DNA of 64,000 nt from Marsupella aquatica (lineage: Eukaryota; Plantae; Marchantiophyta): NCBI GenBank assembly GCA_973895155.1, contig OZ316898.1, forward strand, positions 6,559,079 through 6,623,078. The letters run 5' to 3'. The notes beneath the pieces are model-generated. The model was not told the origin of the DNA, did not search any database, and was given only the letters and a program-made list of their open reading frames with translations. Below, in pieces: positions 1,520 through 64,000 of the stretch. A program made the translations under genes and the position numbers. The stretch's first letter is position 1; each line of letters begins with the position of its first letter.

Positions 1520-4500
1520 TCACTCACTTCTTTTGTCCACAAGTGCATACAGATCGCCTCTTCTTTGGCTGTCCAATGGCATGTTCAACCTGCAGATAGC
1601 ACAATGCATGGAAGGATTAGCTATTTTAGGCGCCAAACATCACCATTTAGCAAGACCGCGCGAGGACTACAGAATGACGACAAATCCTCCATAATTGAAA
1701 CTCCTATCGCGCATAAGCTCAGGATAAAGCAGGTCTACAAAGAAATTGCGTTTCTTCAACAGAAGACTTGCCTGCCATGGTTAGATATTTACGAAACAAA
1801 GTACAACCTTGTTGCTGAGCGCTTCAGGCAGGGAAGTTAATACAAACCTTCTTTTACTAATTTGCGAGTAATCAATCTCGCCAAATATGGTGGCTTCTTT
1901 GTCCTCTGTTGTTGCCACAATCTCTCCAAACTGTCAGCGAAACAAAAACTTAATTAAACCATGATGTTGATATTGTTGGTCGATTGACTCATCATGGTGG
2001 AATCAGAATGGGAAATAAACACAGAAGAGTCAAACTTGGATGGTCATTGTAAAAACGCCTCAACTCAGGTGCAACAATTGCTTCTCGCCAAAGGTATTTC
2101 TGAATTTTGCAGCTGAGCTTGATTCTACCTCTAAACCGTCTAGCAAGTGACCATCAAAGGAAAATTTGTTTCTTTACTCACGGGTCCAACAATAGTAGAG
2201 TGACCCCATGCAATGTAGCCAGCTGCATTATCCCGCGCAGGAGAACAAGTGACGACATACAGCTGTAACATCAACAGACATCAGTATGTGCCTTACTCCT
2301 ACTTCTTTCGTACAAAGGCGAGAAACCGTGGGGAACAACTGCAGCCAATAAATTCCAGGAGAGTTCACAATTCCTCATCTACAGAGTAAGAAAGCCACCC
2401 ACCTGATTATCCACAGCCCTGATCGATAGATGATAGACGCGTTTGATGAGGTCACAAATATACAGAACAATCGAAGTCATCAGTAAGCTCGCAGCTGACA
2501 ACGCTGAGGGTAAACTTATCAACATCCAGATTCTCACTATATTTTCTGTACAACTTCCTGAGATGACCGACATTGAAATGTACTACAAAATAGATTGCCA
2601 CAAGTAATATCTGATCCCGATTACTAAATTGTGAGGGGAAGGTTCACAGCACAGCATGATGATGACTATTTCCCGCACTGAAGCCCCTAAGACGGATCGG
2701 AAAATCTCAATAACCAAAAACATTTGACCAAAGAGCTTGATATCTTATACAACTTGAGGACAACTACCAATGAGTGCGAACCCCAAAAGGCTACCACAGC
2801 TTGGAAGTTCTTATACCGTGCTTTCTGCAGAAGCTCCCAATGAAGTGGCCCCGTGGTCATGTTGAAAGCTCCTGGGTAAGCTATCAAATGAACACCTGTG
2901 AAAGACCATTTCCAGTCATGAAACACAGAAAACTGGAGAACAAAACCTTATTGCACTTTCTCTTAAAACATCTCCATGTCCATTCATTTCCTCTTCTCGA
3001 AAACTTCAGGACTTTTCCAAATCCAAAACTATTGCATTTAAGTGTTATCCCAGCATCAACGGATGTACTTAGTGGCAACAAGATATGAACCTCGTGTAGC
3101 ATACAGCATGGCCATCTCGGAAAATCGGATGTCATAGCAGATACCAACACCGATCCGCCCAACATCTGCCACAGGCAACCATTGATAAGTCAATCTGTAA
3201 AAGGAAGCGCGAAGAGGGTGCCACAGCAACTTAATTTGCTTGCTGATTTCAATACCAGGATTGAACACATTAAAGGACAGTCATATGTCTACAGAAGGTG
3301 GTTTCTTCACATTATAAAGAGTATTACTCAACCATATGTTTTGTGTTGACTTGATATGCGTGGGTAGTGACATTTAAGAGTGAATGAGTCCTCTATACTC
3401 TGTTGTCTATTGCGCCTAAGTTGTCATCTTAAGAGCGTTCACGAGACGTCTCGAATGTATCGGCCCTGGTAAATGAGCGTCATCTACTCATATCACCAAG
3501 ACTGGGCAGAGTTTCCGTCACTTTGCCTAAGTAGCAGTTTTGAAGCACTTTGGATACCTGTCTCGACGACAGTCAAGCCTTCACCAGGAGAAAGTGTTGC
3601 TGATTCCTTAAACGTAATCTGCCCTGGAATATCAATATCGAACAGGTGCACCTGTTGAAATGCCAAGATGTCATGAGTAAGCTTTCAAGCTCCCAAGCAA
3701 GGAAGGCTTCACATCAGGCTAAAATATCTGAAAAATAGGAAAAACAGCAAGGTGCAAAGATACCTTTCTGTGCTTGCCTTTGAGCTCTCCATCCTTTCCA
3801 AAGATGTAACAGGTGTTGTACAACCGATCATTATTTCTTTCAGGGATTGATCCACCTATGATTGTTACTCCCTTCTTCTGTGCAACATCTGCTAGCATGG
3901 CAGAAGAAGGTCCAGCACTGCCCGCTCCATCACTTTCTTCCGCATATGTAGGAAAACTGTCATTTGAATATGGGCAGTTCCACATCTCCTACACAACCAC
4001 ATCTAAGATCGAGTTATTACATACTACAAGAGGGTCTCAAACGCCGATTTGGCTCACGCATATTTTTCCAGCCCTGCACACCATTTCTCACAATGCAAAC
4101 TCTGAAGAGGAGTTATTCAAACATGCTTCAGCAAGTGACGAATAAAATATCAACACGATAAGTAGGGAAGTAACGAGCTTTGACGCGAGAACATCTGCTA
4201 AGATTATGGTGCTCACCGGTAACACAATGAGTTGCGCACCGTTGTCCGCAGCTGATTCGATTACTTCCCTTGCATGTGCTATATTGGTTTCCTTGTCTGC
4301 CACCACAGAAAGCTGACAAACTGCAACTTTATACTGCACATATCAAAATCAAACCATCAGCTAATGCGCATCAACAATCTGGATGATCAAAAACTGATCC
4401 TATCGGACATGATTTAGACGGGGCAAGCGGGGAGGGCATGAGATAAGCCTTAGCTCTCATGACCCTACATATTTAACATCTGATACAACCCATTATCACC

Positions 4501-5617: not shown

Positions 5618-6129
5618 TCTCAAACTCGAAGCTCCCCCATGACTGCAGCAGTGCCAGCCTCTTCACTATCGGAGCTACTGACCTTCAGTGACATAGCTCA
5701 CGGGTGCTGTCATGCTGTGATCAGCTCAGCTCAGCTCAGCTCAGCTCCAGAGCTTTTACCGTAGTGCTTGAGGGCAGGGTACTTTAAGGTTTTTTTTATT
5801 TTAGCAAATGTGGCGAATGTCAGCCTTTCTCAAGGTTTAGAGGACATGCTAGGAATAGTTTTTATCTCTTGTTCCTTAATTATTTCTTGACCTTCAGATA
5901 TCCCTAGATTTAGAGTACATGCTGGGAATATTTTTTATATCTTTTTCCTGAGTTATTTCTTGACCTTCAGATATCCTTAGATTTACCCAATACAATCTAT
6001 GGGGTACATGATTTTGTGGGAAAGTGGCTAATGACAAACATAGAATCCACCCAGTTTTGCCAAAAGTGGCAACACATTTTAGGGAGGTGGGCTAATATTT
6101 GCACCTAAAAAATACTCTACTTCGGGGCA

Positions 6130-6851
6130 AGAAAGTGTATGTCCCTTGTTCTGCATTTGGTTTCCAAAGGTTTTGTGTAGGATAAGTCCTGTAGTCTTTA
6201 TGCTTGAGAGTACTCCTTTTCTACGTAAGGTTGTTAGACATTTACTTTGAGATCTAAAGTTACAACTATAACTATAGTTAGGGTTGACCTTAGTCATGAA
6301 CTAGGTTGCACACTATATCACAGACAATGTTTGCTTGGATTCTTGTAGAGGCTAGTTGAGAGATAGGGAGATCTTGTATTGCAAAGACTCAATATAGCGA
6401 CGGGCCTAGAGTGTAGTAAAGCTTTCGTGTGTTTGCATGGAAGGAGCCTCAGCAGAGATGAACCACATATCTATGTGTGTCAACTACTTGTGCGTTGAAT
6501 GTTCAAGGGCCTATCGTTGTGGATGTTATCTTTGCTCAACAAAAGGCAGGTAGGACGAGCCTTCACTCCCTTTCCTCCTCGTCACAGTTGCCGCACAAAG
6601 GCAGATCTGAATATAAGACATAGCCTGGACCACGTCTAATTGGTAGTCGCTCCCCTTGGAGAACTCACAACACCAACAGGTTAAATGGAGGAAGTCACTC
6701 ATTGTCTTTCTATGTCAACTCTCCTGGGATCTCAAGATTAGCCCACGGCCTTAGAATAGGCTTGAGTTCACCCACCATCCATTGTAATGTCGTCTCATTT
6801 TCCTGGCCGATTTGCTAGCGCTCAGCATCGACTGGTGGTTGGGTTACAACT
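6130..6851 (+). mobile_element. Degenerate LTR-like fragment
   Basis: Segment 6415-6495 (gtaaagctttcgtgtg..gaaccacatatctatgtgtgtcaactac) resembles 26196-26270 inside the LTR-like element at 24868-26696. Boundaries are not resolved. Confidence 0.35.
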
Positions 6852-8700: not shown

Positions 8701-10143
8701 CTCAAATCACGTGTCCAGAACTTGACTGTACCTCTGACTTGGCGGTCCCAGCTTACTCAAATGGCGTGTCAAGCAGGCAATGTACCGGGACGTTCACTAT
8801 ACACAATTCCAACAATTCCTAAATCAACCTGGAAAATTATAGCCAGAAAATGCTAGAAAAGCCGAGTCAAAACTGGTGAAGGCAGTTGTCTCCTTATTCT
8901 CCATTGAATTCTATGGCTCGTTCCAGTAGCGTCGGTTCTGAAGTCGAACTCCTCATGTCAATCAGACGATCCAAACAACTTCGTGAACAGGGCTGAGGCT
9001 TTCATTGACACCAAACTAGAAGATGACCTAAGACGGGCTTCCATCAGTGGGCGATTATGTGAACCATGTCACATATTTTCACTCGCCAGAGGTTTTCGAG
9101 GCACGCAACTACCGCTGGATGAAAATCATGCAAATGGGAAATATAGCTAGAGTCGATGCAATTATAAGATATTTGACCTGTGTACAATCAAATATCTAAC
9201 CTACCTTCGGTATAATTTAGATAGCCAATTCAAACTTCGCAAAATGTTACAGAAATCTTTTACCCAAAAATACCACCGGTCTTCAAGACAATACGTATGC
9301 AGTCGCATCCCGGTTAGGTGGGGGCTTTGCTTTTCACAACTTGTCAACAGAACAACAAAAGCAGAAGACAAGCAAACTCGGTGATGGAAAAATTTATATG
9401 GAAAGAAACAATTCAAAAGAATGAAGCTACATATGAATTAAGTTTAGAACTAGATCTCAGAGTGCTATGGTATTTGCAGCTTGCTGAATCAATTTGGCTC
9501 CACGAGCCCACTTTTCCTTCTTGACAACTACTTGATTGCCTAAAAAATTGCCTGCCTCCACATCCCTCCGACTCACAATGTAAGCTATAATATCGTCAGG
9601 GACCACAATAGTGCTCCAGACAGAAATAGACACTCATTGCTAGTAAATAATGTGATGTGGCCAGTATGGACTATACTACTCGGATGTCACAGTCAGAATT
9701 CATTTGAATTTTGGCTGCAGGTTACCAAATCCTGTTAGCTGATTTCCTAACCCATCTAATATCTCTCACTACATATTGTCAGGGTCGTCCACCCTCAATC
9801 GATCGTACAGTTGATGTAGGCAGGCAACTTGGCTCTAAAGGAAAGAACTCTTGTTGCGAGTCTCGGATTCCGATTGCGGTCTTGCAATTAATCTGGGAGT
9901 ATACATCATCATCATCAAGCTACGTTACATGCCATCCCCAAGTATGGAATGACCTTGGAGCACTTCTCGGACGCTAGGATTTCCGACGCCAGACCCAGCT
10001 TCATGGAAAAGCATTCTAATAAACCTACCCTGGAGTGAAATTTGGGACGGCACGTCTCTTTTCAAGTGGACCCACTCAACCGCATTTTCTCTCATGAGAC
10101 ATGATCTATATAATACAAATCCTTTTCTTAATGACTGCCTTCC

Positions 10144-44602: not shown

Positions 44603-47600
44603 CAAGGGGGCCCTTACAAGATAGTGGGGGTCGTTCAATGCATGTCTCTCCATCCAAAGCAAAGCTGATGGCCACTTACACAAAAGTTAGAATGCCTGAG
44701 CCAAAATATGTCCGGTCTGGAAAGAATCAATGAATGCAACTTCCTGAAGAGAAGCAGCCCTCTGCTCCAGTTTTTTAGACCACCTCAACAGGAAGTCTAA
44801 AAAACTCCAAATTTTGACAAAAAACATGCACACATCAGCAAAAGGACCCACAAGGGGCCCACTGACATATAACTAGGTTAGGTAATGGTTTTGCCTGACA
44901 GTGCCCCCTAGTTCATGTAAAGTGAAGTGTGGCCTGTTCCCACATGTGAATGGCTACAATTGCATTTCAAACTCAGAAAAAAAAATATACTGGTACCCCC
45001 AAGTTCTTTTAAAGGTACACTTAATCACTATTAACCACTAAGTTAAGGTCCACCAAATTTTGAGGTTTGAGACCCACTATTGAGAGAAAAGAAAGGGTTG
45101 AGGAGACTGATGGAGATGCAAGGAAACAACCCAAGAGTGAGAGCTTTTTTTAACTCATTAACTATGAGTCCCCCATATCAGTGAACCCATTCCTCACTGA
45201 ACTTGGGGCATTAATTTTGCAAAAAAATTTCTCGGGTGGCCACCTAAGTTGAACAATTTTGATGAACTTGGACACCAATTTTGCGGTCGGCTTTTCTCTC
45301 TTGAAGCCATGCTAGATTGGAAAATATTCACTCTCCCGCCTTCTGAGCTCTCGGCTGACCTTGCTGAGTCATCTTCGTAGTAGTGCTCAATTACAAAAGT
45401 TCCACACGCACATGATTGATGGGTGTGATTGATACTTGATAACCAATTTTGACTGATGGGGTTGTGATGCTCGCAAGATCTCTGAAATGCATAAAATGAT
45501 ATTGTACCTCCTGAGAGGTTGTTCACCCCATGAAACACTGATATCAGTGAAGCTAGATGCCCTCACCAAACTTGAACATCAACTCAGCATTCAACATTTT
45601 TTTCTCTCAGCGGTCACATCAAGTTAAGAACATTCCACTCCGCTGACATTGTTGACTCACTTTATTCAACTTAATAGCCCTGCTATTCCTAATTAGTTCG
45701 TGGACCCCTTGACTAATTGATAGCCTTGACTAATTGATAGCCTAGTTATCACAAACAGTTTTCAAAATCAGGCCTTTTCGGTACATGCTACCAAATTCTC
45801 AAGCTACGAGAATCAAAATTCAATTTGTGACATTTGCAATTAGATGAATGTTTGATCAAATGAATTATTTCAGTTCGTTGAGTGTTCAAGTTAGGACCAT
45901 GGCTAGCAGTTTACCTTAATTGCAAATGGCCAAAAATCTTACTCCAGGTGCCAATTACCCTTTGACAAGAAAATTATCAAGTTAGTTATTAGTCGTTATT
46001 TATTATATGAAAAACATTTTTTATAAATCTTTGAATTTAAGTTTTAAAATTGGAAATGTAACTAAAATGGTTACATAGTGACAGTTTTAACAGTCTTGCT
46101 ATTTACATTTCTAATTTTTAACTTTTCTTTTACGGCATGGCGTCCTAAAATGTACACTCAAATTGACACAAACACGAATGAAAACTATAAGTTTGACTCA
46201 CAAAACTGATGAGTCTTGTTTGTTGCGGTTATTGTTGATGTGGCACAATGTGGTACAAGGAATTTTGGAAGGGACCTCTGGTGGGGTCCCTAACAAGATC
46301 CTTTCTATCACTGGTCCAAACTTTGGGAATCAGGCTAAGGAGTTCAAAGTGATATACTTTTAACTGTAAAGTATCAAATCTGGCATCAAAATAAAACATA
46401 AAATAAAATAAAATAAATCTGGCATTCTCACTCTCACTGGAACGATTGATGGATGATTGTTCCAGTTTTGGGGATATACTAGACGAGTAGGTTAGCTACG
46501 TTTCCATTGTAAGTGTCACTGGATTTTCTCCCATTTTGGTTGAGTTTTTTTGTCACAGATTGTGGAGGGGAAAATAACATTAGATTACTTGTCATGTCAC
46601 TCTTCATTGCCTTAATAAGAAATAGCTGGGTTGGTCTTTTCTTTTGCCTCCTCCCTTCTCTACAGTAGTCGCCTTCTCTACTTGCGTTGAAGGTGCAACA
46701 CTAAAAAAGTAACTAGCATTCTTCACCATCAAATTATGGGCCTTCTTTAGTTGCGTTGAAGGTGCAAATCTAAACAATATTTGAGAGATATACTTAGTGG
46801 ACCTCCAAATGCAACTTTCTCTCTTAATGGACCAAAAGTTTCCCACGCCCTCCCAATGGACCCCAAAGTTTAGATTCTCTCCCAATGGACCTCCGGGCTC
46901 ACTCCGTACAGGTATGTTCTTATGAAACAGCTTACCACGCAGTTTGAGTCCACTGCGTACCCTGTGGAAACCGTGGTTGCTCATGTGTAGTCGGCCGTCA
47001 ATAATGTCGCAGTCCACAAGCGTCATAGCCCTGGCGGCAATCGAGCTCCGCGCAGCACCATGGCAGTTTTTGTGAATACAGTATGACTATTGTATTCAAA
47101 ACAATAATTGAATGAGTTTGCGGTGGCATTGGAGCCTTCGTGCCCGACCTCACAGGATTTCAGAATACATTGTCACTTTAGTGTTCAAGATACAAAGGAA
47201 ATAGTTTATTGGAGCTTGCAACAGCCGGCAAGCCGTACCTCCCCGAACCTCCTTGCTTTTATGAAGACATTGTCTATAATGTGTACAAATCTTAAAGGAA
47301 TAATTTTCAAAATTCAAATGTGCCCGCCCTTTATGGAACCCTTTGGGAACCTGTTTTGTTGTCATTTGGTTTGTTACTCGACATTTTCTCGTGTTGCTGG
47401 TTCCGGCTCGTGTTCTTGGGGCCCAACCTCCGTGACAGGAAACAGGAAACAGTAATGCTCATAACAGGAAAAAGAGTGCAACAAAACAGGAGATTACCTA
47501 CTATCATCGACAAAACATGACATAATTCTGGACAAAAAGGAGACCAAGTTCAATCGGAACTCCAATATTTTTAGGGCGGAATACAACAATATCGGAAGAC

Positions 47601-47760: not shown

Positions 47761-50700
47761 TTATTCTAAACCATGCGAATTCCTCCTTCCTATGATGTAC
47801 TGGAGTTCTCCAACAGTCAAAATTGGCTGGCTTGGTAAGACCGAATCCAACGGATCAAGCTTGAAGATTGTTTTGTAAACCCAGTACAAATGTTTATAAG
47901 GCATGAAAGGTCTTCCTCAAGAATGTCGGTGAAAGAAGTCCTCACAAGAGCAACAAGGGAATACGCAAATCTGCACCCAATAAGTGTTTGCCGTCCTTAG
48001 ATGAGCGTGTGTTTGGATGAGTAATCGTTTCCCATATGAGTTCCCCGAGGAAACGTCCAATTTTGTGATAAGAGTCATTGTTTCCTTCGCAGCAGATTCG
48101 ATCCTTCTATGGTATTCCTGAGTAAGATTTGATCTGGGGTTCATTGGGCGCCCATTCCTAGTTCGAACACGGATGTTGATTTGTGCCATATTGATCTTCT
48201 CAGGAAAAACATCAATATTGATTCTCAAGTCAAAAGGCGTAGGTTTGGCAGGCATGCTTTGGTGGTGTTGTCTGGAGATTGCAACCCCCTGTTCTTCCAG
48301 GAAATGTAACTCCAAGTTTGACAAATGTGTTCCTGTTAGTACTGGCACGGAAACTGGATAAGGAGGCAGGTTAGCGATGCCTCGACATGGGTGGCTTTTC
48401 CAACAACTGCCGTTGGGGCAAAACCACATGAACTCGGCATGAGGTTCACTCCTAAACAGGCAATGTCCCTTCGCAACAATTCCGATCACTCCAGCATTAG
48501 AAGGATATCCAACCTTCTTAATCCGGTTTCGACACTCATCACGATCGCATCTACTTGACAATGTCCCGTTACACTGAGGACCAGGCCCAAGTCTTGAAAT
48601 TCGACGAAGATGCCAAGACCCAGGTTCAACGTCCGACTCCAAAAGTGACGTGTCAGGGAGGACTGGAGTTTGGTCCATTTGAGAGACTTCTGGTAATGTG
48701 GAAAATTCTTCACCTGGACCAGAAGCAGATGCGTCCGGCAAGTCACTTGGGCCCTCAATCCCAGTCAAATCGATTGGTGTCTCAGGAACACTTGGTGGAA
48801 TATGAGAAAATTGAGCCGAGTTCAAATTTCTCCATTTCAAACCCCGTGTATTTGGTGTTGTTATCAAAATGGTGTCATGACAATGGGAGTCTTGTGCCGA
48901 GACATTCCCTGTCGCTGGACCTTTTCTTTTGATAGATTTGGTTACAAAATCACCGTTCATTGGAGTACTCCTCTCCAAATCAAATTCCGCCGCATTAGCT
49001 AGTAGCAAATTAGAAGCCTCTTCGAACAATCGAGGGGATCCAGCCAGGTCCGCTAAACGGAAAGCTAGTTCAAATACCGTAGGACCTGCTCCTCTATGTA
49101 ACCCATCCCGATAGGTAGTATAAGCAGCAATTTGAGAGATTGCACGATTGTGGTTAATTTTACAACCCTCAAATAATCCGACAGTTTTCTTCCCTTGCCA
49201 AGCTTTCATGATACCATGAACTGCCTCAGATCCAGTGCAGTTAGGAATCATCCCTCCTTCTTGTGCACTTTTGCTCTGCAGGACGGCCAGAGTTCATCAA
49301 ATCTCAAAATCTACTTTTGGAAGATAAGTTGATATTCTTCAACAATATGTATCAATTAAAGGTAGCGCAAGGCGCTGACCAAAACGCTAAGAGAATCAAG
49401 AAAAAGAAGGTGTTAATAATAGCGCCAGGCGCTAGTATGGAAGTGTCTATTCAATAAATCAAAAATGGTGATACTTACAAGTTGAATAAAATTTCCCCAT
49501 TGCCGCCATCTTACAACCCACCAAGAGATCCATCCCTGCAGCATCCGAAGCTTCCCGGGAATGCAATTGCCAGATCTCCACCACAAATCAATTTCTCGGG
49601 AAATCCTGTAAGCTTCGACAAACGTTGATGCATTTATGAGCTTATCCCAGAGGAGGCGATGCTCAGAACGTTTGTCTTCAAGCACTCCTTCGATAGAATG
49701 GCGGTGCAAAGATTGGTAAAAATGAAAAGCATCCGATCTCTCTTTCTCCGGATTTGGATGGCCCCCAAAGAAAACGTTTCTGACCGCACGCCACCCCGAC
49801 TGAGCATTATCAGCCATGAATCCATGAATTTGAACATCATCTACCCCATTTTCTAAAGCAACCTCGATCATTAATCTCCATGCTTTCTCGAGAGATTCAG
49901 TGTCCTCCGCTTTCAGCTCACACATAAATATTGTACATAAAGCTCGATAGTTATGGTCATAAACATGGGCGCTAAAAGTACTCCAATCTTTCGACATTCG
50001 TTTCATGACATCAAAACTCACCCACGCACCTTCAAGGGGTCCACCCTTTTTCATCTGTCGCAACAAATCTACTCTGGATCCATGCCCTTTGATCGTCATT
50101 TTGAAAATATGAGCTCGGTCCTCCTTAGAGCCTTGCCCTGGAAGTAGATACCTTTGAACAAACGGGAACCTGACATTCTTCTGCATCCGAACCAGATATT
50201 CGAGGTCTCCTCGCCCGGCCTGATCTTTCCGGACACTCTTAAACAAGGCAAAGAACTTTTGCGGAGTCAAAACAAGCATAAGTGATTGCCAAATCTCACT
50301 CTCTTCCATCTTCGAGATGTCATTGATAGATTCATCTAGTCATCCTTAAGAGATCCAGTGATCGCATTTTTCAAAACACTTGGCGAGGAAGAAGGATTCT
50401 TCAAATGCTCTTTCCGAATCTCTTCGACCGCTATCATCTCCAAACTTCTAGACCAGACCTTTCGACACGGATGGTTATGGACACCCATATGCACTGCAAG
50501 GTGTGACATATGTTGCGTTGTCGCCGAATCCAGGAGAACTTGTGGGTACATGTAAAACATTTTTGCGGAACAGGAGTCCAAACAGAACGAAAGTTGAAGA
50601 CAATACCGACAAACAATCCCTCCTGAATCAATCAACTTTCCTAGACAATGTTGGCCTCCCAACTTGGGGGTCCCTTCCCAAGAGCTACAATTCCTACCAT

Positions 50701-51505
50701 TTGTTCTGGTATAAAACTCGCATGATTTGTTTCAGCATTCAAGTGATCCGCTACAGCTGACTTTACCAAACTCCCACATCTTCTTCGGCAAAACATTTGC
50801 AGAGGTAGGAAGAATTCGAGTCCAAAGATAGCAATCCTTCGAACGGTCCATGTTAAGTAGACGCTTCCCCTTTGAACCCACACAATCGACAGGCGGAAGC
50901 TCAAATATGACATTGCCGTTGTAAGTTTTGGGAAGAAATTCTACTTGCTCGTGCTTGAAAGTCTCTGATCGTACAAATCGAGATAGCTCACTTTGACCAG
51001 TCAATTTCAGAAGGGCGTCTAACGCGCTCCTTCTGTAAACTATAGCAAGAGAAGGAGATTTAAGAAGCTTGTCACCTCCACTGTCTTCCGTTGAGGTACT
51101 ACATTGATGCATTGGAAATGAATTCATTAACAAATGACACTCTTCACACTTGATGTTCCTAATGTCAATCGGCAATTGAGAGACAGGGGAAGAGTCATCG
51201 CCATCAGACGTGAGGTCAATGACCTCTGTTGGTGCATCCACCGTCTCTAGTTTCACTACTTTTCCTCGGAGGAAAAGCGTGTACTCGACACCGCAGTGCA
51301 GTTCCCACCATTTTTGACCAAAAATGTAAAAAGAATTCACTACCCCCTCGGTAGCTGTCCCTAGGCTTTGAATGTCTTTCCTCCTAACATCAAACCTTCC
51401 GCAAAGATAATTCTCACTCACACGTTGATTACCATCTCCGTAAGTCATAGGAACGCTAATCACGTCTCCCATTTCAGGACATTTTACCCTAATAACCCGT
51501 GACAT
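47761..51505 (-). pseudogene. Mutator/MULE-like DDE transposase with an N-terminal GCM/WRKY-like Zn finger and a C-terminal SWIM finger (disrupted)
   Basis: Joined ORFs 51505-50732, 50662-50336, 50309-49479, intron 49478-49276 (GTAAGT..TGCAG), then 49275-47761. Motifs: CSGSLEC*NKSC..CRYC..HMGVHNHP; SFDVMKR (D); GFMADNAQ (D); DAFHFYQS; TGSEAVHG (E); CSCEDF..PYKHLYWVY (SWIM). Stops at 50732-50734 and 47917-47919; frameshift near 50340. Confidence 0.8.
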
Positions 51506-52489: not shown

Positions 52490-55400
52490 ATGGACAACAC
52501 TTCCCCGGGTAATTCTCAAACATCGGAGACATCTTTCGCTGGTTCTGTTTACACACGACGCGTTACTCGCTCGACTGCATCGCATTCTCTTTGGAACTCT
52601 GCGCAAACTTTCCCAACGTAGAGACGAGGTGTCATGGAGAACTCGAGTGATTTCATCATGGAAGACGGGTGTGAAGGGTCGCTAGCGATGGGAGATGTGA
52701 TTGCCAAACATGCAATGTCGTTTGGCACTGATTTCAGAGGAGAGCCCAAGGACCCTCCGCGTATACCGCTTTGTCACCTAGTCAATATGGAAGTTGTTCG
52801 GACTCTCCAGAAGGAGAGTGCTTCAATCGAGAAGCTAAAAGAATCATTTCGCAGTTCCGGTTACAACTCCTCCATTGGGATGCAATTCTATGTGCAACCC
52901 GCTGATTCTGAAGGCGTCATCCAATTTTGTACCCCGGAATTCGCGAGAGTTGGGATGCTGTCTGGACAGTCTAGAATGAGAAATTTGAAGCGGACTGTGA
53001 AGCAAATCCAGATTTCCTTGTCTTAAAAGACAAGATGTTTTGTGTGTTCGACGGGAATCATCGTCTGTATTCCTGGTCGCAGGTAACAAAAGAGAACCCC
53101 GAAAATGTCAAGTACCACCCTCGTGTGCTATGCACTGTATTCAAGGGAGATCGAGGTTCTCTTATTGAGATTGAAGCCGCCATGCACACTGTCAATCAGT
53201 AAGTTTGGTCATTTTCTTTGATTTGGACAAATTTTCAATTGTGGGATTTTGGTTAGCGTTTGGCGCTAACAAATTATGGTTGTGTACAGATTGGGGCAAG
53301 CCGTTGTAGAACCGTCGTGGATCCTCGATGCTGACAGAATTAGTCGGATTCTGTCCCATGACCTTGATTATTACAAGACGATAATTGACGCCAGAAACTT
53401 CAAACGCTTTGAGGCAATTCGCGCAAAGACAAGGAAAGGCTCTTGGTATACAAAGAAGATGCCTTTGGAGGCCCTTGTATACATCTTGTGCGAGAACAAG
53501 ATCAAGTCATACTCTGTGCAATTCAAACTGGACATGGCGACTGCAAACACTCAAGGGAGGCCGTGGTCAAAGGAGGAGGTCACCAAGCGTCATGCGGCAA
53601 TGATGAAGGAGGCCACAAAAGAATGGAGCGTGAAGACCTCAAAGATCACTCCACACCTTAGCCCCAAATTCGAAGATTTTCTGTCAACATGTGCGGAAAT
53701 GTACACGCTGACAGAGAAAAACAAGCGAGAACAGAAAGTAGACGCTGTGGTTTGCACGATGGATCGTGCTCGTCTCTTTACTGCCGTCTCAGCTTTGGAC
53801 TCAAAGTTGCATTCCACTCTTCTTGTGGCGCATTGCACGCCCGAACTTTGCAAGCAATTTTTCCATCCGCCGAGTGTGAACGACGAACCAGTTAAACAAT
53901 GGTGTCACACTTGGCACATGTGGAGTTGGATCGAAGGAATTTCAATGGGGATGATGCAGACTGCTCTCAGACAAGTTCAATCTGTCATGCCTCCGGAACG
54001 ACTTGTCACAGGAGGTGTAGAAACTTTTGATGCTTTAGTGCAGACCATTTGCAATGATTTCAAAAGTTACGGAGATACAGTCAAGGCAAAGTTTTTTAAC
54101 ACAATGTGGGCGTCAAAGTACGGGGAGAAAGAAGATTTTTCTTCCCAAAACCAGAAGCGGGCAAAGAGATACCTTTATCGGTTCTTCTTGTCCATGGAGA
54201 GCAATTCTCCTGAATATTTCTGGGCTTATCCTCCTGCGTTCCAGAGGTGGTCGGTCATGGATGGGGATGATTTCAGTGAGGTTTACTCGATGTATCCTGC
54301 AGAAGGAGCCAATCCTCCACGTGATATTTCCGTTTGGGAGCGAACAAACTGTCCCTGGTACCTTGATACTGATAAGTGGGATACACCTTTTGATGAATCT
54401 GAGAAAGACGCCTTTTTGAAATTGTCCAAATCTTTAGTTCCTCGCAAATGGTTGTCTGAGATGAAGGAAGGATTGTTGGGAGACGTTGAAGCTTCTGCAG
54501 TGGAGCTTCAAAAAATATGTGAGACTAAAGTCTTACATGTTGACAGGAGCCGAAAACCTCGCGCAAAAGTAAAAGTTGATACAGGATTGAATAGCCCATC
54601 CACGAGATCCGGAAGAAAACGTAAGTTATATGACTTTTTGAAGTTCTTCTTGATCTTTTCCTCTGAAATTCACTTAGTTGTTTGCATTGATTTTGGTTAG
54701 CGCCAAGCGCTACTTTAAACTATTAAATGTATACTCATACAAGAGAATTTAGAAAGTAAATGTTTGGCTAGCGCCGGGCACTGTTATAGTTTCCCCAGTG
54801 TTCTTACCTTTTCGATTCTCTGTAGGGGGTAGGAAATCAGAGGGAGAAGAAACTCAAGATGCAACGACGACCATTACCCCTGATCAATCTGAAGCAAACA
54901 CTGAGGCTGACGATGCTACCCAAGAGCAGACTCCTCCTGCAAATACCAACATTGATCGTCCAGTTGATGCCACAAGCACCAGGAAAAAGAAGAAGAAAAA
55001 TCTTGATCTCGGTTCTTCTTCTAGAGATTCGTATGCATGTACTGGCGTCCAACGAGAAGTTGGTCAATTCAAGTCCAAAGTTTGCCGTCATATGTTTGTT
55101 GAGTCCAGTCTAATGGACTTTTTTGATTCTGTTTTTACAAAAGAGACTAAACCCAGGTGGGTGACGAATGTCGAGAAGTGGGGAAAAGACTTAGTGACAC
55201 TTGGTCTCCGAGAGAAAGGGGTAGTTAGGGGAGGCAAGTTGAGATCTTTTGGGGTGGATGCGGGTTTTGTCTACCTACCGACAGGTCTACGACCTTCTTT
55301 GCTTCACCGAAAATCGCCAAAGTGGAATGTACCGGATCACCGAATGGTTGGCTCTTTCTTTCGGGCAATGGACCCATTTCTTGCCGATGATGGGTTGTTA

Positions 55401-56695
55401 GCAGTTTTGCACACTGGGGAGTATGACCAGATCTCCCAAGTAATTTTGGCCAGCCAAGATTCCCAAAAGTTCTAGTGCCTCAAAACGCTCAACGTTGTTA
55501 TGGGTGCCCCAATGTACATGGCCAAAAGCGATTGTCAGGTAATTGTCCTTTTGAATCAAGAGAATCATTTGCTAGCGCTTGGCGCTATTAATAGATCTCA
55601 TTTCATGTTTGATGTTCACATGTAAATATCCTTGTGTACGCAGGGTCTTTTGGGTAGCGCCAGGCGCTATTAATATATGTTACCAAATCTCATATTGAAT
55701 ATTGTTTATTTTCCAGGTTTTCACCTTAAGACTTGATATCTAAGTTAGTCGAGTTACATCGAAGGTTAGGGTCCCCAAAGATTCAAAGTTCAAACCTTTG
55801 TCTTCAACCGAGGACCCTTCAATCACAAACCTCATTGGGCTGCAGACTCTGAAGAAGGATCCTGTTCCAGAAGCTACATTTGCAGGGAATGCACGACTAC
55901 CGGTTGGCTTCATGCAGTCTGTCTTGGAGTTAATTTCTCGTCCGGGAGATATTATTATGGACTGGACGGTTGGGTCAGGAAGTACATTTGTGGCTGGTGA
56001 TTTTTGTGGCCGTTTCATCCTTGGGATTGAGAATCGCAAGGAATTTGTTTGTATTGTAGAGAGGATATACACTGACCTTCTCCTCCCGAAAGAATCGAGT
56101 GAGGCTGGTCCGAGCAAAGACATGGAGAAAAAAGTGAAAGATAAAGTTCGATCTATTCTGAATTTTGATTCTGAAGAAGAAGAAGACGATGTAGCTGATG
56201 AAGAGGCCGGGATTGATGTCCAGAAAGAAGGAGAGAAAAAGGATGAGGGGAATTCAGAAGGAGAAACGGAAGATTCAGATTCTTCTGAGTAATGCCCGTA
56301 AGCTTCTTTACATTACTTAACTTTCCATTTTCTTTTTATCTTGTATACTTGAATTACTGGAATCTCTCGAAGTGTACTTAGTGTTTCAACTGACTCGCAG
56401 GTCAGAGTGGAATCTTCGCGAGAGGTTCAATCTGCGAAGGAAATTTTCAAGCAAAGTCCTAATTACCCCTGAGAAACCATTTGTATTGCCTTCATACGCA
56501 GAGTATGCCGCTCGCAAAGAAGAGAGTAGAAGAACCCTGACTTGGGAGAATAAGGGCTTGCGATTGAGACGTGGTTTGGATAGAAAGTTCATCCGTCATC
56601 CATTTGTCGATGATATGGCACGAAATGAATTTATCAACGATGAAGCAGAGAGTACGGATAGATCGGAGAGTAGTGAGTCGGAATCTGGAGATTAG
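52490..56695 (+). pseudogene. ParB-like N-terminal domain fused to a beta-class N4-C/N6-A DNA methyltransferase-like domain; 5 exons (disrupted)
   Basis: Frame-consistent GT-AG introns at 53199-53289, 54621-54825, 55539-55716 and 56289-56400. ParB-like MFCVFDGNHRLYSW at ~53035-53076. MTase elements in beta-class order: VDAGFVYLPTG (motif IV position, 55254-55286), FFRAMDPFLADDGLLAVL, then LPVGFMQSVLELISRPGDIIMDWTVGSGSTFVAGDFCGRFILGIE (motifs X-I-II). Stops at 52619, 52972, 55473 and 55741; frameshift ~52938. Confidence 0.78.
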
Positions 56696-57568: not shown

Positions 57569-58017
57569 GATTGTTTGAAAGATGGAGTCTTCTTAAAGAC
57601 TTTTGCGATAGTAGCGCCTGGCGCTACCGCCATCGGAGATTGAAGGTGTTAGGTTGTAGTCTCGGTTCTCCATGTTTTCTTGCGAGCTTACTACATCCCA
57701 GTTCTTTAGCCGTTTTTCTGCTCGCGGTATCTCTTAAGATTTTGTATTGTCGTCGGGCTTTGTGTTTTTGCTACCATGTAACACACATTTTAAAGTAGCG
57801 CCAGGCGCTACTAATATACTTGGCATTTTTATACACCCTTTTTATTGATGGATGTCACAAATATTGTGTAAATTTCCTCACTTATTTTACTGTTACCATT
57901 TCCTGTTTCCTGTTACTGTTTCCTGTCACGGCGAAAAACCTCTGTTCTTGCTCGTGTTCCTTCTGGCTTGTGTTCCTTTTGGCTTGTGTTCCTTCTGTTC
58001 CCGCTCGTGTTCCTGCT

Positions 58018-62781: not shown

Positions 62782-64000
62782 GATCTGTTCCAAAATTGGT
62801 CATAGTAGATCTGTGTCTGGGATACAATATGTATGTTGTATTCACATTTTCTCTGACTTTACAACAAAGACGCCCCACTGTCGAATCCTTCCCACTGACG
62901 AAGATGCCCCTGCCTAAGCCTGCCCAAATGGACAAAACCTACGGAATTTGAACACATAAAACCCTTTTTCATGTATACGATTTGGACGTTGTATTCAGAT
63001 TTCACACTTGGAAAAAAAATTGTCCCTCCGACTTTACGAACACGGCCTCCGCCGAAGCCTGCCCAAATGGACAAAACCTACGGAATTTGAACACAGAAAA
63101 CCCTTTTTCATGCATACAATGTGGACGTTGTATTCCGATTTCACACTTGGAAAAACAATTGTCCCTCCCCTCCGACTTTACAAACACGCCCTCCGCCGAA
63201 GCTTGCCCAAATGGACAAAACCTACGGAATTTGAACACAGAAAAACCTTTTTCATGTATACAATGTGGACGTTGTATTCCAATTTCACACTTGGAAAAGC
63301 AATTGTCCCTCCCCTCCGACTTTATGAACACGCCCTCCAATGAAGCCTGCCCAAATGGACAAAACCTACGGAATTTGAACACAGAAAACCCTTTTTCATG
63401 TATACGATTTGGACGTTGTATTCACATATGGATCTGTTCCAAAAATGGTCATAGTAGATCTGTGTCTGGGATACAATATGTATGTTGTATTCACATTTTC
63501 TCTGACTTTACAACAAAGACGCCCCACTGTCGAATTCTTCCAACTAACGAAGATGCCCCTGCCTAAGCCTGCCCAAATGGACAAAACCTACGGAATTTGA
63601 ACACATAAAACCCTTTTTCATGTATACGATTTGGACGTTGTATTCAGATTTCACACTTGGAAAAAAAATTGTCCCTCCAACTTTACGAACACGGCCTCCG
63701 CCGAAGCCTGCCCAAATGGACAAAACCTACGGAATTTGAACACAGAAAACCCTTTTTCATGTATACAATGTGGACGCTGTATTCCGATTTCACACTTGGA
63801 AAAACAATTGTCCCTCCCCTCCGACTTTACAAACACGCCCTCCGCCGAAGTTTGCCCAAATGGACAAAACCTACAGAATTTGAACACAGAAAAACCTTTT
63901 TCATGTATACAATGTGGACGTTGTATTCCAATTTCACACTTGGAAAAGCAATTGTCCCTCCCCTCCGACTTTATGAACACGCCCTCCGCCGAAGCCTGCC
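62782..64000. repeat. Satellite with a ~144-bp subunit and a 649-bp higher-order repeat, running off the window
   Basis: aagcctgcccaaatgg (or a 1-2 nt variant) at 62916, 63055, 63199, 63343, 63565, 63704, 63848 and 63992; spacings 139, 144, 144, 222, 139, 144, 144. Confidence 0.93.

Follow-up and report, generated by a model that had tools for sequence, protein, structure and literature searches.

Accessory genes of the ParB-methylase kind have already been published for the transposons of algae. In Ectocarpus, the element Sola1-1_Ec32 encodes, on the strand opposite to its transposase, a 1104-aa accessory protein composed of a ParB-like part and an N4-cytosine/N6-adenine (N4C/N6A) methyltransferase part (PMC12477816). 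In the red alga Bostrychia, the Plavaka elements carry the ParB-like and methylase accessory genes PAG2/PAG3 together with adjacent inverted-repeat arrays (bioRxiv 10.1101/2025.02.11.637652). For land plants we found no publication on such genes, within a literature coverage that is incomplete. Here we present the analysis of a locus in the liverwort Marsupella aquatica, which occupies positions 52490-56695 on the forward strand of a 64,000-nucleotide stretch of contig OZ316898.1 (assembly GCA_973895155.1, positions 6,559,079 to 6,623,078; this whole stretch is called the window below) and lies inside a 10.5 kb element with terminal inverted repeats. On the whole, the ParB-methylase family found in the window is a further member of the published group, of liverwort type. 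The explanation that we favour, and hold to be reasonably probable, is that a two-gene terminal-inverted-repeat DNA transposon, of a kind that liverworts carry as well, has left here a decayed copy of its accessory gene, and that the intact protein is a non-canonical DNA-binding helper.

The comparison with Riccia sorocarpa gives the frame of the gene. The open reading frames (ORFs) of the locus are fragments in three frames of the forward strand, and they match in order the annotated Riccia sorocarpa protein P0110 (KAL3677308.1, 1207 aa). A tblastn search against the window covers residues 119-1191 of this protein overall: frame 2 gives residues 119-233, frame 1 gives 235-321, frame 2 again 326-759, frame 0 then 830-1021, and frame 1 once more 1085-1191. 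The fragments are predicted to be five exons with a total of about 1206 codons, separated by four predicted GT-AG introns, all frame-consistent, which are read from the sequence and from the ORF breaks of relatives. Two metagenome contigs, L001 and L002, show the same exon set as ORFs, with breaks at the same protein positions as in the window. All searches with the window gene were made exon by exon.

Exon 1 (52490..53198) codes for a low-complexity N-terminus and then for the ParB/sulfiredoxin (Srx)-like domain, at about 52685-53198. It is followed by intron 1 (53199..53289, 91 nt, GTAAGT..CAG), at whose protein position the ORFs of L001 and L002 break too; the Riccia gene has no intron there and reads on uninterrupted. 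Exon 2 (53290..54620) holds the family-specific middle domain of about 443 aa and is open in the window copy, and intron 2 (54621..54825, 205 nt) is placed by the frame join and by the breaks in L001 and L002. Exon 3 (54826..55538) begins with a charged linker containing a K-rich run and continues into the N-terminal half of the methylase fold, up to intron 3 (55539..55716, 178 nt, GTAATT..CAG, phase 0); at the same protein position, residue 1054/1055, the Riccia gene has its single clear intron. Exon 4 (55717..56288) completes the methylase fold with its C-terminal half, in which motif I and GIE lie, and goes on into an acidic stretch; intron 4 (56289..56400, 112 nt, GTAATG..CAG, phase 2) is predicted from the frame join in the sequence. 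Exon 5 (56401..56695) encodes a conserved C-terminal tail, PFVLPSYAE ... PFVDDMA, with a serine/acidic run at its end and the stop TAG at 56693-95. This tail is kept in L002 (E 2e-14 when the tail exon of L002 is searched by tblastn), and its motifs are also present in the sequences of P0030, P0120, P0123 and P0124. The acidic tail described by a first-pass annotation of the locus, which was made from the letters alone, is therefore present, and a conserved tail exon follows it.

In the intact relatives, of about 1200 aa, the order is a disordered N-terminus, a ParB/Srx-fold domain with the DGNHR loop, the family domain of about 440 aa, a charged linker, the methylase fold, and the acidic stretch with the conserved tail. 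In Riccia DNA, one unbroken frame leads from the ParB-like domain into the middle domain, and another leads from the remainder of the middle domain through the linker into the N-terminal half of the methylase; because the domains are joined there in uninterrupted frames, the fusion is independent of the splice predictions. The sequences thus place the ParB/Srx-like domain and the beta-class amino-methylase fold in one gene. The joining of the window's own exons is predicted, and this has to be counted against our explanation. The fusion is shared with Riccia sorocarpa and with the metagenome contigs at 26-38% identity, and it is, judging from these sequences, an old one. Riccia has dozens of copies on several chromosomes. 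The gene model of P0110 itself changes frame between adjacent bases (L003 11398-11400) and skips about 33 residues of the first exon; this annotation seems to patch a damaged copy, and the Riccia models of the ParB-methylase family are, it seems, not to be taken as intact.

The middle domain defines the family. Searched with exon 2, a library of 1.84 billion proteins gives 107 relatives at E<=0.001, the closest being P0001 (38% identity) and P0002 (35%), which lie on the contigs L001 and L002, both of one ENA assembly. Neither in the window nor in 20 relatives does the domain match a Pfam family or a PDB sequence, and a word search gives no match either. The long unassigned middle noted in the first-pass annotation is thus borne out, at about 440 aa and with no Pfam or PDB match in 20 members. 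DUF6589 was considered as an identity for it, on an Atlas lead at 0.92 with low recognition, and was rejected, as neither hmmscan of 20 members nor the PDB sequences gave support. The prokaryotic or viral origin suggested in the first pass is a candidate only; the searches brought up no relative of the family from prokaryotes or viruses, and a word search with the Riccia fragment P0111 leads to Riccia proteins only.

The earlier proposal that four introns join the fragments into one gene of about 1200 codons holds for the layout, which matches P0110, L001 and L002, and for the introns, but not for an open gene, since stops and a frameshift interrupt the window copy. In exon 1 there are a TAG at 52619-21, a 1-nt frameshift at about 52939-52941, where the tblastn frame switches between adjacent residues, and a TAG at 52972-74; exon 3 has a TAG at 55473-75 and exon 4 a TAA at 55741-43, all in frame on the forward strand and located by tblastn. 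The alignments with P0110, L001 and L002 continue across 52972, 55473, 55741 and the frameshift, and the relatives have sense codons there; the stop at 52619 is less sure, the alignment across it being weak. An 83-nt GT..AG 'intron' at 52892-52974, which would restore the frame, was rejected, because every relative has some 28 residues that align within this segment, which is therefore coding sequence. With four stops and a frameshift the window copy cannot make the protein. The locus is, as its reading frame stands, a dead, decayed and non-functional gene copy, and it is of value only as a record of the family, of the intron layout and of the palindrome layout.

The 10.5 kb element around the gene has terminal inverted repeats beginning GTGACAGGAAACAG, the left one at 47432..47455 and the right one at 57893..57929, so that the element ends at 47432 and 57929. 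Besides the ParB-methylase gene it contains a head-to-head partner gene, the putative transposase, made of three ORFs at 47917..51505 on the reverse strand. In Riccia, the DNA upstream of the ParB-methylase gene is collinear with these partner ORFs and has a core of 46% identity to them (E 6e-80). Hence the placing of the gene within a transposable element, as the first-pass annotation had it, agrees with both the terminal inverted repeats and the conserved head-to-head partner. A MULE transposase was considered as the identity of the partner, on an Atlas lead at 0.89; it stays a lead only, as Pfam gave no match for the window ORFs or for 12 relatives, and PDB sequences gave none either.

The element is also marked by a palindrome, TAGCGCCNGGCGCTA, of which 16 copies with <=3 mismatches lie between 47608 and 57810, all within the element and confined to its non-coding DNA. 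By chance 0.7 copies are expected, and no shuffle reached 16. In the ParB-methylase gene, none is found in the exons and five are found in introns 1-3, namely a degenerate one at 53254 in intron 1, two in intron 2 (54698 and 54769) and two in intron 3 (55573 and 55655). L002 and the Riccia locus carry palindromes different from those of the window. The corresponding introns of L002 have their own palindrome, with core AACGACGTCGTT, and the Riccia locus L003 shows GGCGAGnCTCGCC three times between its two divergent genes (8744-9229) and AGCGGAnTCCGCT three times in its flanks, at 4256, 14877 and 15080. In several imperfect copies of the window palindrome the departures from the consensus are C-to-T or G-to-A (TAGCGTTTGGCGCTA and TAGCACCAAGCGCTA are two such copies), and three of the four premature stops of the gene are TAG; these changes and the TAG stops fit a decay by deamination of methylated cytosine.

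It could be asked whether the locus is instead a gene of the host, or a set of ORF fragments that stand together by chance, and not a transposon accessory gene at all. Such a reading can point to the element ends, at which no target-site duplication is visible, and to the partner gene, which has no Pfam transposase match; the latter result also weighs against our own explanation. Yet we consider it very improbable, given the collinearity with a 1207-aa protein, the gene pair conserved across species, the dozens of Riccia copies on several chromosomes, the terminal inverted repeats with palindromes confined to the element, and a decay that is typical of dead transposon copies.

As for the published algal systems, the likeness to the Ectocarpus Sola1-1_Ec32 protein, which is by architecture only, includes the domain order, a methylase of PF01555 type and a length of about 1100-1200 aa. 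In both cases the gene stands opposite to the transposase, here a putative one, in a large DNA transposon, and for both proteins a binding or modification of the element that carries them has been proposed. Unlike Sola1, the window family has liverwort relatives, sits in a transposon that probably belongs to another superfamily, and lacks the catalytic tetrapeptide family-wide, and the window copy is dead. With PAG2/PAG3 of Bostrychia the family shares an accessory protein of a transposon with a ParB-like domain at its N-terminus, and a DNA methylase is among the accessory genes there too. However, Bostrychia has ParB with a 2-oxoglutarate oxygenase and methylase with SET as separate genes, whereas the window family has the ParB-like and methylase-like parts in one protein; the repeats of Bostrychia are adjacent arrays, while those of the window are dispersed palindromes, some of them intronic.

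The methylase-like domain is supported by profile searches. Exon 4 matches Pfam PF01555 (N6_N4_Mtase) with 32.4-32.5 bits against a cut-off of 26.7 (E 1.1e-7), a match that spans profile positions 163-219 of 221 only, and this confirms the methyltransferase fold and N6_N4_Mtase pattern read in the first pass. Among PDB sequences, exon 4 aligns across motif I with the DpnA-type HpyAVI, CcrM and MboIIA. A profile of 23 family sequences finds CcrM over about 200 residues with E 2.4e-6, and the AlphaFold model of P0111, with a predicted local distance difference test (pLDDT) of 70, matches CcrM, M1.HpyAVI, MboIIA, BceJIV and RsrI in Foldseek with E 1e-9 to 1e-7. On the whole, the closest solved structures to the methylase domain are the bacterial CcrM and HpyAVI. 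The bdelloid N4CMT (PDB 8s9m/n/o) matches less well than CcrM, both by the same profile (E 0.26 vs 2.4e-6) and by Foldseek with the same model (1.6e-6 to 3e-6 vs 1e-9). It and the Marchantia DN4MT1 are PF01555-type enzymes of prokaryotic origin in eukaryotic genomes, and the window family resembles them in its PF01555 match and its eukaryotic setting. The ParB-HTH/Dam fusions belong to a different methylase group (PMC4738411).

Motif I reads DWTVGSGST (55960-55986), where W stands in the place of the P of DpnA, and here the comparison upholds the first-pass annotation. Across the family, conservation of the two glycines is 16/16 and 15/16 and that of the D before them 16/17, and W, F, M or Y takes the place of the P. 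The acidic E of motif II, which comes after the next strand and is part of GIE in the window, is present in 14/17, and a GF[VM]Q motif is invariant in all 17. The motif IV position is YLPT (55272-55283), and it follows the strand at 24-30 in the P0111 model; as it precedes motif I, the order is that of the beta class, just as had been noted. Relatives have ALPT (L001), CFPH (L002) or D-[LM]-[PS]-[ST] (Riccia), with neither an aromatic fourth residue nor the second proline in any of 15 members, and the clade of the window has lost the D/N/S residue as well, with Y, A or C instead. The catalytic motif (D/N/S)-P-P-(Y/F/W) is thus absent across the family, and an inspection of motif IV in other copies, which had been suggested as a check, finds it non-canonical in every family member examined.

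In amino-methylases, the D/N/S residue and the aromatic residue of motif IV hold the flipped base. Because the aromatic residue is missing throughout, and the D/N/S residue in the clade of the window as well, the family is not a canonical N6A/N4C enzyme. With CcrM, M1.HpyAVI (DpnA-type), MboIIA and RsrI it shares the fold, the order of motif IV before motif I and a residue-by-residue alignment of motif I; CcrM-type enzymes, on the other side, have DPPY/DPPF, while the window family has Y/A/C/D-[LMF]-P-[TSH] and no aromatic residue, and also large added domains and introns. Marchantia DN4MT1 keeps TSPPY (bioRxiv 10.1101/2021.02.12.428880). Taken together, the profile matches and the model indicate that the domain is a beta-class DNA amino-methylase fold in which the S-adenosylmethionine (SAM) glycine loop is kept and the catalytic tetrapeptide is lost, and the family may be either a pseudo-enzyme or an unusual enzyme. 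The idea of a changed specificity or of a non-catalytic binder, as put forward in the first pass, is fair for the family and not an accident of the window copy, because motif IV is non-canonical family-wide; it does not apply to the window copy, which makes no such protein. In UniRef, P0108, P0110, P0111 and other Riccia sorocarpa copies are named 'Trimethylguanosine synthase', which looks like an automatic mislabel, the sole family match found being the C-terminal part of PF01555.

The alternative is that the intact members are active methyltransferases with a divergent catalytic loop, which mark their own palindromes with N6-methyladenine or N4-methylcytosine, the ParB-like module targeting or spreading the enzyme. 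The conserved SAM loop fits such an enzyme equally well, as do the D before it and the E of motif II, together with the invariant GF[VM]Q; moreover D-[LM]-P-[ST]-G is itself conserved in the Riccia clade, in 12 copies, and the authors of the Ectocarpus protein, its counterpart by architecture, read that protein in this way, with the idea of a 'self-modifying accessory protein' (PMC12477816). These points count against a non-canonical helper, and so does the source of the fold evidence for both domains, since the modelled proteins are relatives with 43% and about 25-30% identity to the window and not the product of its own broken gene. However, the aromatic residue that stacks on the flipped base is missing from every member, another residue always takes the place of the second proline, and the clade of the window is without the D/N/S residue (Y, A or C). 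We therefore regard active enzymes as rather doubtful, and keep to the DNA-binding helper.

For the N-terminal domain the evidence lies mainly at the level of fold. The DGNHR motif (53050..53064, forward strand) is read from the sequence at the GxxR position of the ParB/Srx fold; it is also present in L001, in L002 and in most full-length Riccia proteins (P0110, P0025, P0112), and P0030 has DGNHQ. The model of the L002 domain, which is 43% identical to the window piece, has pLDDT 85 and a predicted template modelling score (pTM) of 0.81, with DGNHR between the strand at 122-124 and the helix at 128-140, where the fold carries its GxxR loop. Its top Foldseek matches are ParB, Noc, KorB, Srx and PadC, with a probability <=0.93 and E of only 0.09-2. 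By VIA-align, the model superposes on 97-98 residues of Noc and ParB with Z 7.8 and a root-mean-square deviation (rmsd) of 2.9 A, and all 26 of the 26 rows at Z >= 4.6 are of ParB/Srx type, the N-domains of ParB, Noc and KorB reaching Z 6.8-7.8 vs 4.6-6.1 for Srx.

Several results limit how far this may be carried. A Z of 7.8 is within the range for which the tool warns of a common arrangement; Pfam gives no ParB match either for the window pieces (E <=10) or for the relatives (E <=1); a profile of 24 family sequences finds no match for the ParB-like domain among PDB sequences; and no helix-turn-helix (HTH) or other DNA-binding domain was identified in the ParB-methylase protein. All of these weigh against our explanation. 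Against NCBIfam the only matches fall below threshold and are to DGQHR families (TIGR03187 with E 0.013, others with 0.18-0.2). The ParB-like core with DGNHR that had been claimed at first thus survives in its motif and in the fold-level match (Z 7.8), but not in the Pfam, NCBIfam and PDB-profile searches. With moderate support from the model, we accept the name 'ParB/Srx-fold domain', and do not accept membership of ParB proper. Like the N-terminal CTP-binding domain of bacterial ParB, Noc and KorB and the wider ParB/Srx superfamily (Srx, DndB DGQHR), the domain has the core fold, a GxxR-type loop between strand and helix, and cognate-looking palindromes nearby; it differs from bacterial ParB in that no similarity is seen at the level of Pfam, in an inserted helical segment of about 40 residues, and in the lack of a recognised HTH or dimerisation domain and of a ParA partner, no ParA-like gene being found within the element.

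These differences raise the question whether the N-terminal domain is functionally not ParB, being rather a DGQHR/DndB-like or sulfiredoxin-like module for nucleotide binding or a nuclease, with the palindromes bound by the transposase or another protein. The sub-threshold DGQHR matches (E 0.013 and 0.18-0.2) are the only hints at the level of sequence and point in this direction, Srx, SbnI and a serine kinase are among the fold matches, and neither an HTH domain nor a ParA partner is found. Against it, ParB, Noc and KorB outscore Srx (Z 6.8-7.8 vs 4.6-6.1), and element-specific palindromes accompany the gene in each relative. We take this reading to be unlikely, while giving it a serious share of the probability.

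With the DNA-binding helper as the favoured explanation, the intact protein would not act as a canonical N6A/N4C methylase. It may recognise the palindromes of its own element, although the domain responsible is a candidate only, which counts against the explanation; the ParB-like nucleotide-binding module could then build a higher-order complex on the element, and this complex might act on the divergent promoter as a regulator, assist in transposition or protect the element. A bolder version, which we put forward as a tentative and on balance improbable one, is that the intact family is a eukaryotic, transposon-borne analogue of ParB-parS. A nucleotide-gated ParB-like module would work here with a SAM-binding, non-catalytic reader derived from a methylase on family-specific palindromes, which would be seeded in the promoter region, the flanks and the introns; protein and sites would co-evolve, and the complex would control the chromatin state or the transposition. 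If the family works as we infer, land-plant DNA transposons carry their own sequence-specific system of self-recognition, and it would be built from parts of bacterial partition and restriction-modification, as proposed for algae. The loss of the catalytic tetrapeptide family-wide, with the SAM loop kept, makes the question a sharp one, that is, pseudo-enzyme reader or unusual enzyme.

Two further ORFs were noted near these genes. In L002, an ORF at 6035-6451 on the reverse strand, downstream of the accessory gene, matches DUF659 (PF04937) with E 7.9e-12, and could come from a transposon of another type that lies beside the element or is nested in it. In the window, an ORF of 194 aa at 62982-63566 on the forward strand has weak, sub-threshold matches to 4Fe-4S cluster-binding domains (E ~2e-4).

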